From positions 186,001 to 250,000 of the forward strand of contig QPMI01000610.1 in the NCBI GenBank assembly GCA_004431415.1: DNA of 64,000 nucleotides. The letters run 5' to 3'. The notes beneath the pieces were generated by a model that saw only the letters and a list, made by a program, of their open reading frames with translations, was not told the DNA's origin and did no database searches. Of the stretch, positions 46,286 through 54,400 are shown piece after piece. Made by a program: the position numbers and the translations under genes. Every line of letters starts with the position of its first letter. The first letter of the stretch is position 1. This stretch comes from Cyanophora paradoxa CCMP329. Lineage: Eukaryota; Plantae; Glaucophyta.

Positions 46286-46986
46286 CACGTCTACGCCTAA
46301 CGAGCATTAGCTGCAGTCTGCAGATGCTGTTTTTGTTGCATTAGGCCACATGGCCACCTCGCACATCCCAAGACGCCGTGACGAGCAGGCCTAGGGGGCG
46401 GCGGCGAGTCGAGTCAGCACTATCTCTATCTCGGCTAACCGTTGAACCTGACCTTTCCTACTCAACCGTTAGAGGTCCTTCCCCTCCAACAGGGCCACTG
46501 CGACAGCAGTGTCCCTGTTCCGTTCATATTGTGCACGTAAGCACTGAATTTCGAAGGATACACATTAGCCTGAGTTAAGCAACGGAGCAGAGTCTTGGCC
46601 ATGCATATGGGGCCCGGGGTCGACGTCTGATATCGATATCGATATTTCCAATTACGAACCTCGGAAACGTTAACGCGCCGCTAATGATCGAGATCAGCGG
46701 CTGATTCAGTACTAGTGAGCCTTGCAGCATATCCGCGCCGCGATAGCAATAAGATAGAAAATACGATAGCAGAATACCAACAATATTGTATTTCTATACT
46801 GTGAACACACCGAGAATAAATAGCTGAGCGGGGTAACTTCGCAACTTGGCGACGGAGCGAGGGTACCGGTGGGTGCGAGGGCGGGGCCTCGGGCCGAGGG
46901 AGGAAGGTCCGGGGAAGGACGCGGAGGGCCCGGGTGCAGGCTGCCGCGAGCCGAAGGCGGGGCGGGGGCGCCGCCCGGGGCTATAG

Positions 46987-48345
46987 CTAGTCCGGGAGGA
47001 GGTGCATGAGGGCGACGTTCTGGCGCGGCTGCCCCGCGAGGAACGGCTCCCGGCAGGTCGGGCACAGCCGCGGCGCCACCCGCCCCACGCACCCACCGCA
47101 CAGCGTGTGCCTGCCCCCCCGCCCCAGGGTCGCGATCGGCCTCCGGTCGAAGCTCGAGGGCGTGGGGCGCACCCGCAGGGGAGGCTCTGGGCGATGCGGC
47201 GCTGCGCGCGGCTGTACCCCTCCATGCAGATGGGGCCTGCAGGCCACCGATCAGGCCGCGGGCGGGCGGGGCGGGGCAGGGCGGGGTAACGGCGCACATG
47301 AGAGGGACTCCTCGGGTACCGCGATTGTCCCGCTGGCCGCGGGCGGCGCCGAACTCGTACCCGCTCCCGGCCGGGCGGGACCGGGCGGTCCCGGGGTCCC
47401 CGGCGCGACGATCGGCGGAAGCGTGCGCGGGGCGGGCCTGGGTACGTGGTTCGGGTTCACCGCGGGGGGACGCGCCCCCTCGAAGTAGGGGGGAGGGGGG
47501 AAGCCGAAGGGGGACGAGACGGCCAGCGGGGCGCTGGGCGGGGGGGAGGGGGCCGGAAGCAGGGGGAAGGTGCAGGCCGGAGGGGCGGCAGGGGTGCCGG
47601 CGCGGTGCGGGGGGGAGGGTGTATGGGGGGAGGGCCGCGACGGGAGGGGCGGAGGGACCGGAGCCGGAGGCGAGGCAGGGGGAGGGAGGCGGACCTCGGG
47701 GGAGACCGCGCCCCGGGCGGAGGGCGCCGGCGGCGGGGGCGGCGGGCTTGAGCTCGAAGCCGCAGCCGAGGCGGGGGCGGGGCCGGCGGGGCGGACGGGC
47801 TTGCGGCGGCGGGCGAGGCGGGCGAGGGCGACGAGGAGGACGATGACGGCAGCGCCGGTGAGGCCGCCCCACGCGGCGACGACGTACGGCTGCGCGAGGA
47901 AAGCGACGGAGGCCCCGATGTAGAGGTGCGCACCCAGCGGCACCGGCAGCAGCGGCCGCTCCGCCTCCCCGCCGGCCCCAGCGCCCCCCGCCCCCGCAGG
48001 CGGGGCCTCTCTCAGGCCTCTGCGTCCCCCGGAGCCCCGGTCGGCGGGCGCCCCGCCGCCGCCGACCGCGCGGGTGCTGTCGCCGTCGCCTGCAGCTGCT
48101 GAACTCGAAGCAGCTTCGACGGCGGCGCCGGCGGCGAAGAACAAGGCTGCTACGGCGAGCAGCAGGATGCGCCTTGCTCGCCCTCGCCCACGCCCAGGCC
48201 TTCGGCCCGGGCCGCGCGCCGGCCGCGAACACGGGTCCGATGCTGCATCTGGAGGCTGGGCGCTACAGCTGCAGCCGGCGCCGCGCGATGTATCGCAGGG
48301 CTGCCGCTGTTCTGTGTCGCGCGCGGCCCGCGCGCTGAGAGCCAT
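46987..48345 (-). CDS. Membrane-anchored RING-HC E3 ubiquitin ligase (start uncertain)
   Basis: Hydrophobic segments ILLLAVAALFFAAGAAV, LYIGASVAFLAQPYVV, WGGLTGAAVIVLLVALARLARRRK; Pro-rich linker; spliced C3HC4 CPICMEGY...LPCGHTLCGGC...CPTCR...NVAL. Confidence 0.85.
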
Positions 48346-48882
48346 CCGCGATGCTAGCGGGGCATGACGTTCGAAACCCCGCGACCAGCTGCCAGCGCCC
48401 GAACCCCGAGCGACGAGTAGCAGCGGGAGCTGCTGATTCCGAGCGCGGGTCCGCCTCTGCCCCAAGCCGCCACCTGCGCCAAGCTCAGCTAGCCCCCGCA
48501 ACGGCTCGGGATCAGAGCATCGTTAGCTGAGAGCTGTACCGGTCTTGCAGGTCGCGCGGTCAGGCCGCGAGACTCCGGAAGTGAAGTCGGAAGTCAGGTC
48601 TGCCGGGTACAGCTCATAAGGGCTTCGTGGGCGGGCAGGCAATTCGAAGAAGGCGGTGAATCGAAGCACCGGTGGAGCACTCGCGGCGTCCGGGTGCGTG
48701 GTCTCCTCGCCCATCACGCCCAGGTCAGATCAATTCTTGCGTCGCGGCTGAGTCACCGGACCTGCAGCGAGCGACCGGCGAGCGCGGACGCAAGGCCGTG
48801 ATACATCGGATTCGGTCGCGAAGGTTTGAGCCGCGTACACATTCGCTCGCACGTCGACTGTTTTCAAACTTGGCGCGCAGAC

Positions 48883-51028
48883 ATGGGGAAGAATTCGAAG
48901 CCTGCGTGCTACGCCGTGCTGCGTGGGCGGACGACCGGCATCTTCTACTCGTGGTGCGTACTTCGCATCAGCGGCGCGGCGCGGTGTTCATCGAAGCCGC
49001 AGGCCCGAGACAGAGGCGCAAGTCAAGGGCTTTCAGGGCGGGCACCAGCGCGGATTCACGTCTGAAAGCGAAGCAAGAGCATGGTTGCACAGCCAGGGTT
49101 GGACGGACGCTGCTGCCGCGCATGCGCAGCAGCCGCAGCCCCACCATTGGCATGCGTACGCGCAGTCCAGCCAGGCGGCCCGGAGCGCGCACTTTGCCAG
49201 CGCCGGCGTTCAGCATTCGAGCCCCAGCGCCAGTTCGAGCTCCACGTCCTCGTCCTACCCGGCATCTCCCGCCAGCGTCTCAGCAGCGGCCCCTCCCGAG
49301 GTCCAGCTGACGCCTTCGCAAGTCGGGTGAGCGCGCCCAACCTCTCCCGCCTCTCCGTCTCCGCCGAGCGCGCGCGGTAGGCCCGGATACAAGGTCCCGC
49401 GGACGTTCAAGATGGCGATGGAGGAGCCGGGGGGGGAGGAAGGCGCCGCCCCCGCCCCCGCCCCTGCCCCGCCGCCGGCGCCCACAACGCGAGGCGGCCG
49501 CGTGTCGGCCGAGCTTTCACCCGACGGTGCCGCCGCCCTCGTCGTGATCCCCTTCGACATGTGCGCATGGACGGGCCGCGGCCTCGCGTCCCGTCCGCCG
49601 CGGCCTCACGCCCCCCGCCTCCTCCGCCCGTCGCAGGAAAGATATCTTCAAAGACCGTGTGCCCGGCCGGTGCGAGTGTCCTGTACCCTCCGCACCCCCG
49701 CACGCCGCGTGATTCCGCCGCTCGCGCCGCCCAGGGAGTGGGTCCCGGCCTCGAAGGCGTGGCGTGTACCCAGGGCGAGCTTCGGCCCGCTGCGTCTATT
49801 CCTGGACGAGGTCGGGGGGCGCGCCTCGCCCAGGCTCCGGACCGCCGTGCGCCACGCCCGCCTCCCGCGGACTGCGCGCGCCCGTCCCGCCTCGACCCGC
49901 CCCGCAGCTGGAAGCGGCAGGCGACAAGGCGCAGATCACAGTTGAAATCCAGCTGGAGCCGGACTCGCCGCGCGCGATCGTCAACTGGACGCCCTTCAGC
50001 CGCGCCCTCGTCAACCTGGTCAAGCGCGTCAGCCCCGACCTCCGCTCCTGGGTACGCCGTAGTCACCTTCTCGCGTACCCCCGCGTCTTCCCCAACACCG
50101 TACCCCCAGGTGCCCGAGCAAAAACACTGGACGGTGGCCATCGCTGGCATGCCCTCCCTCGCCGAGCACCTCCTCGAGGCGCCCCCCGTACCCCCCCCTC
50201 CTCCCTATCGTATCCGTACCCGCCGCGCCGCTCGAACCCCGCGCAGGGCGGGTGCAGCCCGTTCCTGGATGGGAGCGCGGAGGTCTTCCACCCCTTCGTC
50301 GTCTTCGCGGGCGAGGTGGAGAGGGCTCTGGAGGCAGCCGCCGCCGCCTCGACCGTTGCCGTCGACGACGGCGACGACGACGACGACGGGGGCGCCGCCC
50401 CCGCCGCCCCGCCCCTCGCCCTCCCGGCCCCTGCGCCGGCCGCGCCCCTGCCCCCGCCCCCCCGGCCCGCCCCGGCCCCGGCCCCTGCTTTCTACGCTCC
50501 CCCCGTGCCCCCGCCGCTCCCCCTCCGGTCCGAGGGCGCGGCGTACCGGCCCCCGAACCCGCCGCCTCCGAAGCGGGCCCGCGTCGACCCGCACCGCCCC
50601 GCTCCCCCCGTCGAGAGGCCGCGCTGCCCGGATTGCCGGCTCGATCTCAAGCCGCGCCACGCCTGCCGCTTCTTCGGGTGAGCACCCCGCCATCCGCCCC
50701 GCCTGCGCTTTCCACGAAGCGACCGAGCGGCGCGCCGCGCAGGTTCTTCGAGTGCCAGGGGTGCCGCCACCGCTGGTCCAGCGGCTACGTGTGGCGCACG
50801 GAGGGCCAGTACGAGAAGCAGGACTGCCGCCGCTGCGACCACTACGGCCTCCCGGACGAGGAGACGGTGCGGCCGCTGGAGAGGGGCCTGGGCGGGCCGG
50901 GCGGCCCGCACGACAGCGAGCGGTGCCACCGCTGCCAGCGCGGCCTCTTCTGCACGCCGGCCGCCTTCGGCGACATGCCGCACGAGGCTTCCCGCATCTC
51001 CCACCTCCTCAGCCGCCGCCACTACTAG
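48883..51028 (+). CDS. RNase H1-type hybrid-binding domain + two HARP-like domains + 3CxxC zinc finger, 9 exons
   Basis: One continuous spliced frame: YAVLRGRTTGIFYSWPETEAQVKGFQGGHQRGFTSESEARAWL; IPFDMKDIFKDRVPGREWVPASKAWRVP; TPFSRALVNLVKRVSPDLRSWVPEQKHWTV; RFFGFFECQGCRHRWSSGYVW...QDCRRC...PHDSERCHRC. Confidence 0.85.
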
Positions 51029-51408: not shown

Positions 51409-54400
51409 TCAGCGGCGGTCGTGGGAGCGGGTGCGGCGGGCGACGGGGGTCGCCTGCGTCATCTTGAGGCGCTCGATGACGCCCTTGACGCCGCCCTTGG
51501 GGCCCATCGCGCCCTCCCCGCTCTCCTCCTGCGGGGCCGCCTCGGGGCGGGCCGGCGGCAGAGGCGCGGAGGGGCGGGGCGGGGCGGGGCGCACGGCGTC
51601 TGAGTCCTCGTCGCGCTCGTTGCCGGCGCGGCCGAAGAGCTTGCGCGCCTTGCCCTTGCGCGCCCGGGCCGCCTCGGCCTCCTCCGCCTCGCCCTTGTGG
51701 ACGGAGCGGCCCTCGGGGATGGCCGAGAGCGGCGCCTCGCCCTCCTCCTCGCACGCCGCCTCCTCCTCCTCCTGCGCCGCCTTCGAGCTCGAGGCGCCCT
51801 TGCCCATCAGCTTGCTCGCCAGCTTCCGCGCCCGCCCCATCAGCGCCTCCCCGACCCCTGCCAGCCGCCCCGCCGTCAGCGCCGAGCGAGCGAGTGGGCA
51901 GGCGGGGCGGGGCGGGTGCGGGCCCTTCTTGGAGGGGGTAGCGGCCTCGGCGGCGCCGGCCCTGCCCTCCGACGCGAACGAGTGCGCGCTGACGCTCTCC
52001 TCCGTGGGCGGGTCGCTCGAGAACTCCGCCGAGGAGGCCAGCTTGCCGTCCCCGGACTCGGTCGCCGACGCCGCCGCCGCCGCCGCCGCCTCGGCGCGGG
52101 CGCGGCGGGCGCGGCCGCGGGCCTTGGGGGCGGAAGGCTCGGCGGAGGGGAGGGGCCCGCGGGCGGCGGCGGCCTCGGAGAGGGCGGCGTCGCGCTCGCG
52201 GCGGAGCGCCTCGACCTCCTCCTGCCGCGCCCGCTCCCGCCGCGCCGCCGCCTCGTTGTCCAGCCGCGCCTGGATCGCCCCCCGCTCCAGCTCCGCCACC
52301 CGGCTCCGCAGCCGCTCCCTCTCGGCGTCGGGGGCGCCCCCCAGGGGCCCCTCCCCCGAGGACATGACGGAGCGGGCGCTGCCGGGGTTCCCGCTCGCCT
52401 GCCGCAGCTCCCGCACCTCCGCCGAGAGCTTCGCGATCGTCGCCTGCAGCTTCTGCACCTCCGCCGGCGCCTCGCCGGCCGCGGGGGCGTCGCGGGAGCG
52501 GCGGAGGGCGTCGGCCTTCAGGCGCTCGGCCTCGGCCTCCTTGGCGGCGGCGCGGGCGGCCGCCTCCTCGGCGAGGCGGCTGAGCTCCTGGACCCTCCCG
52601 TTCAGCGTCGCGTTCGCCGCCCGCACGTCCGAGAGCTCCTGCGAGAGCTGCGCGTAGCGCCGCGCCGCCTGGCTCTTCGACTTCTCCTCCTCCCGCGCCC
52701 GCGCCGCCGCCGCCTCGGCCTCGCGCGCCGCCGCCTCGCGCCGGGCCTCGGCCTCGCGCGCCTCGCCGGCCGCCGCCTCGGCGCGAGCCTCAGCGGCGGC
52801 GAGGGCGCGCTCGAGCTCGGAGGCGCGGGCGCCGGCCCCGCGGGCGCCGGTCTCGGCGGCGGAGGCGGCCTCGGCGCGGCGGGCGAGCTCGGCGCGCAGC
52901 TCCTCGATGCGCCGCTCGGCCGCCGCCATCGTCGCCCGCAGCGGCTCCAGCTCGCCCGCCTCGCCCCGCGCACGCGCCAGCTCCTCCCGCGCCGCCTGCG
53001 CCTCCGCCGCGTGCCGGCTCGCCGCGCCCCGCTCCGCCGCCGCCTCGCGCTCCGCCGCCTGCAGCTTCATCTCGAGCTCGGCGGCGCGCCGCTGGAGGGC
53101 GGCCTGCGCGCCGACCGCCTCCTCCGCGCGGCCGCGGGCGGCGGCGAGGGCGCGGGTGACCTCCTCGTGGGCGGCCGCGTGGGCGACCTTCTCGCGGCGC
53201 CACGTCTCCCGCGCCTGCTCGAGGCGCGTGCGCTCCTCGGCCGACTCGGCCGCCCGCTGCTCCCGCTCCGCCGCCAGCTGCGCCTCGAGCAGCTCCACCT
53301 GCTCCATCAGCTCTGCCCCGCCCGGCCTCAGCGGACGCGGCGGAAGAGCGGAGGAAAGGCGGGGGAGGCGCCGCGCACTCGCTTTCTCCTCGTCGGCCTC
53401 GAAGGAGCCGCGGGGCAGGGTGGGGATGCGCTCCTGGGAGGCGCGGATGGCGCCCTCGAGCTGGCGGCGCAGCACGGCGAGCTTCTTCTCCATGAGGACC
53501 TCGCCGAGCTCGGCCTCCTCCTCCATGCGGCGCCGGTACGCCGACTCGAGGTCGCGCAGGCGCTTCTCCATCTCCTCCGCGCACTCCTCGCGCACCTCCG
53601 CCTCGAGGCGCGCGTTCTCGCGCAGCGCCTCCGTCCACTTGAGCCGCAGGTCCTCCACGACGGCCCGCAGCTCCTCCTCCTCCACCTCGTCCGTCTCCAG
53701 CTCCAGGTCCTCCGCCCCCTCGTCCGCCCGCCGCTTCCGCCCGCTCGCCCGCGCCGAGAGGCTCGCCGAGGGGCCGGCCGGCTTGCGGGCCGAGCGGGGC
53801 GGGGCGCCCAGGCCGGGGACGATCTGGGCGGCGAGGGCCGTGAACTTGAGGGCGCAGAGGGTCTCGTCGTAGTCCTCCCGCCGCGGGTTCATGTTCATGA
53901 TCATCACCGTCCGCCCGAACCCATTGAACGCGTCCTGGAAGAGGTGCGTCAGCTTGCTCTGCCGGTACGGCACCACCTGCGCCCCCCCGCCGGCCCCCGT
54001 CAGGCGCCGCGCGGAGGAGCGGCGGCGGCGGCCCCGGGCGCGGCCGGCGGGGCGCACGCGGGGGGCGTCGGGGTGGAGCTGGTTGTAGCGGAGCGCCTCG
54101 ATGCAGCGCGAGAGGTTCGAGAGGGAGACGTTGATCGCCTTCGCCTCCTTCAGGCGCGCATCCGTGTTCCCCGTCCGCTTCGCCCGCTCGCTCCCCGCCA
54201 GGTCCACGAACGAGAGGCGGCTGCAGCGCTCGATGCGCTCCGCGACCGCCTGCGACGAGGCCCCCGCGCGGTTGAACGCCTGCGCCGCCCCCCCGTCAGC
54301 CGGGGCGGCCCGGGAGCGCATGCGGGGCCCCGCCCCGCCATGCCTGGGTGAGCTTGAGGGTGAAGACGGAGTGGGAGCGGGAGGAGTCGACGTTGAGGAC

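Follow-up and report, generated by a model that had tools for sequence, protein, structure and literature searches.

What might a protein do that combines three nucleic-acid-binding domains, each familiar from a different group of proteins, and carries neither a motor nor a nuclease? The question is raised by a gene of the glaucophyte Cyanophora paradoxa CCMP329, found on the forward strand between positions 48883 and 51028 of a 64,000-nucleotide stretch of DNA, the whole of which is referred to below as the window (contig QPMI01000610.1 of GenBank assembly GCA_004431415.1, positions 186,001 to 250,000). The predicted product begins with an RNase H1-type hybrid-binding domain (HBD), continues with two HARP-like repeats and ends in a 3CxxC-type zinc ribbon. 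In SMARCAL1 and other SNF2 fork remodelers, HARP domains are the part known to recognise the substrate, the HBD is a standard R-loop probe, and 3CxxC ribbons are poorly understood RNA binders of which ZAR1, RTP4 and Shiftless are examples. An initial annotation of the locus, made from the DNA letters, had read the combination as a non-catalytic adaptor that senses R-loops or reverse-transcription intermediates. The answer that we put forward is a single nuclear gene product of ~549 amino acids acting as a non-catalytic reader of junctions that contain RNA:DNA hybrids, where we infer the substrate, the nuclear location and the effect; we consider the chances of this reading to be evenly balanced. 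All full-length analyses were carried out on the public counterpart of the gene, P0001 (EukProt EP00741 Cyanophora paradoxa P021308, tig00021348_g20568.t1, 549 amino acids), which by exact substring mapping has the same exons as our own spliced model except for two donor sites. Our own model was searched exon by exon and, once joined, was used for the frame check and for the internal repeat alignment.

The domain at the N-terminus is certain to be an HBD. Residues 10–51 of P0001 match the Pfam family Cauli_VI (PF01693) with 52.4 bits, against a cut-off of 21, over profile positions 3–44 of 44, and exons 1 and 2 separately match complementary parts of the same profile (positions 3–16 and 19–44, with 17.8 and 20.9 bits, respectively). 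The structure of the human RNase H1 HBD (3bsu) aligns to the Cyanophora domain with an E-value of 3.9e-7. In this alignment, Tyr29 and Trp43 of the human protein are kept as Tyr10 and Trp24, and Lys59 is replaced by Arg40. Tyr29 and Phe58 are residues that we take to be among those with which human RNase H1 binds hybrids. The HBD of the human enzyme favours hybrids over double-stranded RNA by a factor of at least 25, and a W43/K59/K60 triple mutant of it has lost binding (PMC8677849).

The middle part of the protein consists of true internal repeats, which, based on sequence comparisons and structural predictions, are divergent HARP domains. The repeats lie at the places given for them in the initial annotation. 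The pattern R-x-W-x-P-x-x-K-x-W-x-V is present in both repeats, and their alignment to each other scores 55, compared with 22.6 +/- 4.4 for shuffled sequences, none of which (0 of 2000) reached this value. The Cyanophora repeats themselves have diverged too far to be recognised by Pfam HARP. Among the relatives described below, this model matches 28 of 32 aligned tandem segments at E ≤ 0.01 (best E 7.7e-10), and two full-length relatives, P0022 with 34.1 bits and P0028 with 27.1 bits, lie above its cut-off. When residues 168–312 of P0001 were compared with a profile made from 31 relatives alone, they scored 47.3 bits, the best of 1000 shuffles scoring 4.3. Searched against the PDB, the family profile gave the HARP domain of SMARCAL1 (4o66) as the only match above noise (E 0.018), and the F..K..R.(Y/W)D...K.W positions of the two are in register. 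A phmmer search of the PDB with exon 6 gave no match, and DUF5710, which had been suggested in the initial annotation, appeared in none of the Pfam scans run.

Structural predictions point in the same direction. An AlphaFold2 model of the tandem, based on a 32-sequence alignment, has a mean predicted local distance difference test (pLDDT) value of 86 and shows two beta-beta-alpha-beta-beta-alpha units. In this model, repeat 1 superposes on the N-domain of T4 UvsW (1rif_A) with Z 6.9 and a root-mean-square deviation (rmsd) of 2.2 Å over 63 residues, and the UvsW N-domain has been described as a single HARP domain (PMC4666394). Repeat 1 also superposes on the damage-recognition domains of archaeal and eukaryotic XPB (Z 5.7–6.6, rmsd about 2.0 Å, 53–59 residues), although no sequence relationship to XPB is detectable and no helicase is attached to the Cyanophora repeats. 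Repeat 2 is matched to the SMARCAL1 HARP domain (4o66_A) with Z 4.4 and an rmsd of 1.7 Å over 45 of 67 residues. When the whole tandem is compared with the ESM Atlas, it finds the N-termini of phage and bacterial SNF2/HepA helicases, with template modelling (TM) scores of 0.54–0.61 over 120–129 residues. With the group formed by SMARCAL1, the phage and bacterial SNF2 helicases and UvsW, the Cyanophora protein thus shares the tandem pair of HARP domains, the predicted fold and the F..K..R.(Y/W)D...K.W motif; it differs in that its pair is flanked by an HBD and a zinc ribbon and is not followed by an SNF2 or helicase motor.

The C-terminal ribbon falls just short of both Pfam models available for it. 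Zn_ribbon_3CxxC (PF13695) gives 21.4–22.6 bits (21.4 on P0001), just under its cut-off of 23, and Zn_ribbon_3CxxC_2 (PF17180) gives 20.1 bits on P0001, below its cut-off of 27; the latter model matches 16 of 35 relatives at E ≤ 0.001. A profile of the family ribbon finds the RNA-binding domain of ZAR1 (9jko) with an E-value of 0.0011, and a model of the ribbon (pLDDT 77.6) has ZAR1 as its top Foldseek match, with a probability of 0.99, the next related match being Shiftless at rank 4 with 0.85. Across the family, twelve Cys and His residues show little or no variation, namely 438, 441, 449 and 451, then 459, 462, 483 and 486, and finally 511, 516, 519 and 525. They form CxxC pairs at 459/462, 483/486 and 516/519 together with a Cys438/Cys441/His449/Cys451 knuckle and the His511/Cys525 pair, and are therefore sufficient in number to hold three predicted zinc ions. 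The CPDC at 50625–50636 is the first pair of this knuckle, which is kept across the family and reads CDCG in most members. Compared with ZAR1/ZAR1L, RTP4 and Shiftless, which have the 3CxxC ribbon in common with the family and among which the ZAR1 RNA-binding domain is the closest solved structure, the family adds the N-terminal CxxC-His-Cys knuckle and the C-terminal His/CxxC/Cys site, and in the Cyanophora protein the ribbon is fused to HARP domains.

No catalytic domain accompanies these modules. The Pfam scan of P0001 contained no RNase_H (PF00075), SNF2 or other catalytic domain, and Pfam scans for SNF2, Helicase_C and ResIII came up empty for P0001 and for all 35 family members covered. 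In contrast to RNase H1, with which it shares the Cauli_VI-type domain at the N-terminus, the Cyanophora protein therefore has no RNase H catalytic domain. The domain composition given in the initial annotation has held up throughout: the HBD passes the Pfam cut-off, the two HARP-like repeats are backed by the Pfam matches of the relatives, by profile membership and by the predicted fold, the 3CxxC finger is of the ZAR1 type in sequence and fold and is preceded by a family-conserved extra CPDC, and neither an RNase H catalytic domain nor an SNF2 ATPase is present.

The Cyanophora protein does not stand alone. A HMMER search with exon 9 over 1.84 billion representatives returned 37 proteins at E ≤ 0.001, many of which are 400–650 amino acids long and likewise have both repeats ahead of this ribbon, and a word search added 22 further relatives. 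Besides Cyanophora paradoxa, the named sources are the green alga Cymbomonas tetramitiformis (KAK3234754.1), the diatom Seminavis robusta (CAB9500866.1, annotated 'expressed unknown protein') and the amoebozoan Clastostelium recurvatum (a Trinity transcript); the remaining relatives come from metagenomes and sequencing-run assemblies, and the database names of family members are automatic only. By comparison of sequences, the core of two HARP domains and a ribbon defines a protist family in which the N-terminal modules are swapped. Fingers of the zf-met/JAZ-type C2H2 class (zf-C2H2_jaz) are found at the N-terminus of 12–13 of 35 members, Torus/CCCH modules in eight of 35, GRF ribbons in three of 35, and an HBD likewise in three of 35, to which the later-found P0068 (HBD, CCCH and HARP) has to be added. 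The Pfam description of zf-C2H2_jaz is that of a double-stranded-RNA-binding zinc finger.

Two relatives are of particular use for interpreting the Cyanophora gene. P0020, from an unrelated metagenome scaffold, has the HBD, two HARP domains and the ribbon in the Cyanophora order within one uninterrupted open reading frame (ORF) of 581 codons, which independently supports a genuine HBD-HARP-ribbon fusion over an error of annotation. P0003, a protein of 640 amino acids from an ENA metagenome contig, combines an HBD, an RNase H domain, a GRF finger, one HARP domain and the ribbon, so that one of the N-terminal modules of the family is the enzyme by which RNA:DNA hybrids are degraded. The RNase H domain of P0003 has a score of 120.5 bits, and all five positions that we take to form the active site of E. 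coli RNase HI (Asp10, Glu48, Asp70, His124 and Asp134) are aligned with identical residues; the RNase H1 of P0003 is thus, judged from this alignment, apparently intact. We know of no description of an RNase H1 with such an architecture. A feature search of the ESM Atlas with a further relative, P0023, gave a 0.78 match to a 3CxxC/JAZ cluster and was uninformative. In the literature covered, which does not include subscription journals, we found no description of the family, of a motor-less tandem HARP or of a HARP domain coupled to a 3CxxC ribbon, nor any text in which 'hybrid binding domain' and 'HARP domain' occur together. Each of the three domains is known; what appears to be new is the family as such, with its tandem HARP lacking a motor and joined to a ribbon of the ZAR1 type.

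The linker between HARP repeat 2 and the ribbon shows a feature of its own. In most members it carries a conserved R-S-x-C-G-x-A-K-R-R-x-L-T-x-x-Q-x-x-W motif, which might serve as a nuclear localisation signal and partner-binding motif. This motif is absent in Cyanophora, in which there is only a basic patch of the PKRARV type (50568–50585, in the exon 8 linker, which also contains an acidic run at 50364–50393); PKRARV is possibly a nuclear localisation signal.

Our own spliced model consists of nine exons joined by eight GT-AG introns of 49–97 nt and comprises 1623 nt, or 540 codons, with a single terminal stop. In the public model, exon 5 is 36 nt longer and ends at 49846, with a GT donor at 49847 from which intron 5 starts; with the alternative, upstream in-frame GT donor at 49811, intron 5 spans 49811–49907. 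The extension amounts to 12 extra residues, and these match the family consensus after HARP repeat 1. Exon 7 of the public model ends at 50178, 9 nt earlier than in ours, at a GC donor (50179), and encodes three residues fewer. Intron 7 (50179–50246) is thus of the GC-AG type in the public model, though an in-frame GT donor sits 9 nt downstream, following 50187. Our own model passed the frame check, and since both alternative donors stay in frame, the statement that all eight introns splice in frame is correct. The Cyanophora paradoxa genome has 67.6% GC, its genes contain 9.2 introns on average, the introns average 86 bp, and its public gene models are BRAKER1/Augustus predictions that, according to their authors, still need curation (PMC6704402).

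How could these modules work together? They are three nucleic-acid-binding modules strung on disordered linkers, the inter-domain stretches being rich in Ala/Ser/Pro or Pro/Ala. A-form duplexes are the target of HBD and JAZ fingers, CCCH fingers read RNA, and GRF fingers bind single-stranded DNA in APE2, NEIL3 and TOP3A. Every module placed in front of the HARP and ribbon core thus reads a nucleic-acid structure, which suggests that what the core recognises is a branch or junction found together with such duplexes. Hence, we hypothesize that the Cyanophora protein docks on branched structures that include an RNA:DNA hybrid, such as the ends of R-loops or RNA-primed junctions. In this arrangement, the A-form duplex would be held by the HBD, the branch point between single and double strand by the HARP pair, and a single-stranded tail by the ribbon; the bound protein would then mark or shield the structure or bring in further factors, and would neither cut nor remodel it. 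The hybrid and junction part of the adaptor proposed in the initial annotation is thereby retained as a hypothesis, with relatives that carry RNase H1, GRF or JAZ modules in its favour, whereas its reverse-transcription part has no support and is at odds with the cellular gene neighbours of the family. The further suggestion that such a protein suits a GC-skewed, R-loop-prone genome is unsupported, since members are also known from a green alga, a diatom and an amoebozoan, organisms of ordinary composition; some members are N/K/I-rich, as expected of AT-rich coding sequence.

Several observations speak against a reader of hybrid junctions. For every member of the family, both the substrate and the function are inferred only. 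In the HBD, human Phe58 and Lys60 correspond to Gln39 and Gly41, and because of this Gln and Gly the preference of the Cyanophora domain for hybrids is not assured and may be weakened. The Pfam HARP family (PF07443) had no match at E ≤ 1 on P0001 or on its residues 168–312, nor exon by exon, the blank for single exons of the middle repeats being explained by the introns that cut them. The Z-scores of 4.4–6.9 are within the range where a common small fold can explain the similarity, and N-domains of the tRNA-splicing endonuclease, eIF1 and ribosomal protein S16 also match, with Z 3.5–4.8; as the scores are moderate and unrelated small alpha/beta domains come just below, the fold evidence backs the sequence evidence and does not stand on its own. 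ZAR1-type ribbons, JAZ and CCCH modules are all RNA binders, and a role on RNA only would fit much of the evidence. Lastly, no transcript of this gene was found, and the public model is an Augustus prediction (PMC6704402). With a model predicted ab initio, the locus might represent two separate genes that the model has fused in error, one for a small HBD protein encoded by exons 1 and 2 and one for a HARP and ribbon protein starting at the in-frame ATG within exon 3 (49412), all the more as intron 2 connects two low-complexity stretches and exon 2, left unspliced, runs straight into a stop codon. Set against this are the identical order of domains in the single ORF of P0020, the related arrangements of P0068 and P0003, the strong GTGAGC donor of intron 2, which keeps the frame, and the distance of only 54 nt between the two parts; a wrong joining is, in our judgement, very improbable.

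The main rival is a protein that deals with RNA only, as a regulator or an antiviral sensor, since the ribbon, JAZ and CCCH modules bind RNA and the HBD has lost one aromatic residue, the one at the position of human Phe58. The HBD would then bind double-stranded RNA, the ribbon RNA, like its counterparts in ZAR1, RTP4 or Shiftless, and the HARP-fold units structured RNA, and the protein would control the fate of mRNAs or detect viral replication intermediates. The nearest solved relatives of the ribbon, the ZAR1 RNA-binding domain and Shiftless, are consistent with this, as are the zf-C2H2_jaz and CCCH/Torus modules, which are the commonest at the N-terminus of the family, and the resemblance of the HARP-like fold to the RNA-associated domains named above. 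However, in P0003 this module is fused to an RNase H1 that is apparently intact, an enzyme that needs an RNA:DNA hybrid, several relatives have GRF fingers, the best fold matches are readers of DNA junctions, the tandem matches the N-termini of SNF2 helicases, and the basic PKRARV motif resembles a nuclear localisation signal; we therefore regard a role on RNA only as rather unlikely, though it deserves to be kept in view. At the other extreme, the protein could bind forks or gaps in DNA only during replication stress, for instance in competition with SMARCAL1-type remodelers or as their assistant, with the HBD being degenerate or a mere duplex anchor. The tandem HARP matches to SMARCAL1, UvsW and XPB would fit such a function, and so would the change of two HBD positions that are important in human RNase H1, but the N-terminal modules of the family (HBD, JAZ, CCCH and RNase H1) are mostly readers of A-form duplexes or RNA, and the HBD is conserved enough to score 52 bits. 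This makes a DNA-only protein quite unlikely, and a reader of hybrid-containing junctions remains the reading that we prefer.

Table 1. Coding region, exons and domains of the HBD-HARP-ribbon gene, in positions of the window.
Feature	Position	Strand	Evidence
Whole coding region, start to stop codon; 9 exons, 8 short introns	48883..51028	+	Frame check and exact mapping of the public protein
Exon 1: N-terminal half of the HBD; Tyr10 at 48910, Trp24 spans intron 1	48883..48953	+	Frame check, Pfam, mapping
Exon 2: C-terminal half of the HBD (to about 49087), then Ala/Ser/Pro-rich linker	49003..49326	+	Frame check, Pfam
Exon 3: linker and strands 1-2 of HARP repeat 1; in-frame ATG at 49412	49381..49560	+	Frame check, mapping
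Exon 4: helix of HARP repeat 1, invariant Lys197 and Arg203	49637..49669	+	Frame check, family alignment
Exon 5: strands 3-4 and second helix of HARP repeat 1	49735..49846	+	Frame check, mapping, family consensus
Exon 6: first part of HARP repeat 2	49908..50051	+	Frame check, mapping
Exon 7: end of HARP repeat 2; GC donor after 50178, alternative GT donor after 50187	50110..50187	+	Frame check, mapping
Exon 8: Pro/Ala-rich linker, then first zinc knuckle Cys438, Cys441, His449, Cys451 (50625-50666)	50247..50677	+	Frame check, alignment
Exon 9: main body of the 3CxxC zinc ribbon and stop codon	50743..51028	+	Pfam, homologue search, alignment, fold
RNase H1-type HBD (Cauli_VI), residues 10-52, split by intron 1 (48954-49002)	48910..49087	+	Pfam 52.4 bits; 3bsu E 3.9e-7
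HARP repeat 1, residues 173-240, exons 3-5	49502..49846	+	Repeat alignment, family alignment, predicted fold
HARP repeat 2, residues 250-311, exons 6-7	49935..50178	+	Repeat alignment, family alignment; SMARCAL1 HARP 4o66_A
Predicted three-zinc ribbon, residues 438-525, 12 conserved Cys/His ligands, split by intron 8 (50678-50742)	50625..50953	+	Alignment; ZAR1 9jko

The window is very rich in GC, with a content of about 0.57–0.82 in segments of 2 kb, and its genes have many short introns. Converging on the 3' end of the HBD-HARP-ribbon gene is a long ORF on the reverse strand (51409–54321) that encodes a C-terminal portion of a kinesin motor domain (Pfam Kinesin, E 6.7e-32) and, behind it, a long Ala/Glu/Arg-rich, coiled-coil-like tail. 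The stop codons of the two genes are about 380 nt apart; in eukaryotes, such proximity does not indicate a shared function. Upstream, the long ORFs at 44–48.5 kb have no Pfam match. Among them, the interval 46712–48501 contains, on both strands and in several frames, very long stop-free ORFs with Pro/Ala/Arg/Gly-rich translations, also without a Pfam match, which are typical of DNA with >70% GC and are no evidence of genes. A search for Rfam families between 44000 and 56000 returned none. An origin from a mobile element or retroelement was considered and rejected, given this result around the gene and the position of homologues among ordinary cellular genes: on contigs of up to 32.8 kb, a homologue is neighboured by genes for ThrE, a GMC oxidoreductase, ClpP, BCD1 and bestrophin, which argues that the family is cellular and not part of a mobile element.

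For the biology of these domains, a family with an HBD, HARP domains and a ribbon that lacks both motor and nuclease suggests a role for HARP domains as free-standing readers of structure. The combined architectures, including the HARP and ribbon module on the apparently active RNase H1 of P0003, link 3CxxC ribbons with RNA:DNA hybrid biology. The family also offers compact reagents, in the form of a putative natural binder of hybrid junctions, and an entry point to the handling of R-loops in protists. Its members are scattered over Archaeplastida, stramenopiles and Amoebozoa, a patchy distribution that could stem from an ancient origin or from transfer. As a bolder proposal, which we make tentatively and think more apt to fail than to hold, two HARP domains and a three-zinc ribbon may form an ancient, previously unrecognised eukaryotic module that reads hybrid branch points without a motor and has been interchangeably coupled to an HBD, a complete RNase H1, GRF fingers that bind single-stranded DNA, or zinc fingers for A-form duplexes. 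If this were true, the Cyanophora protein would be a dedicated non-catalytic sensor of R-loops or primer junctions and would belong to the first family of motor-less HARP proteins.

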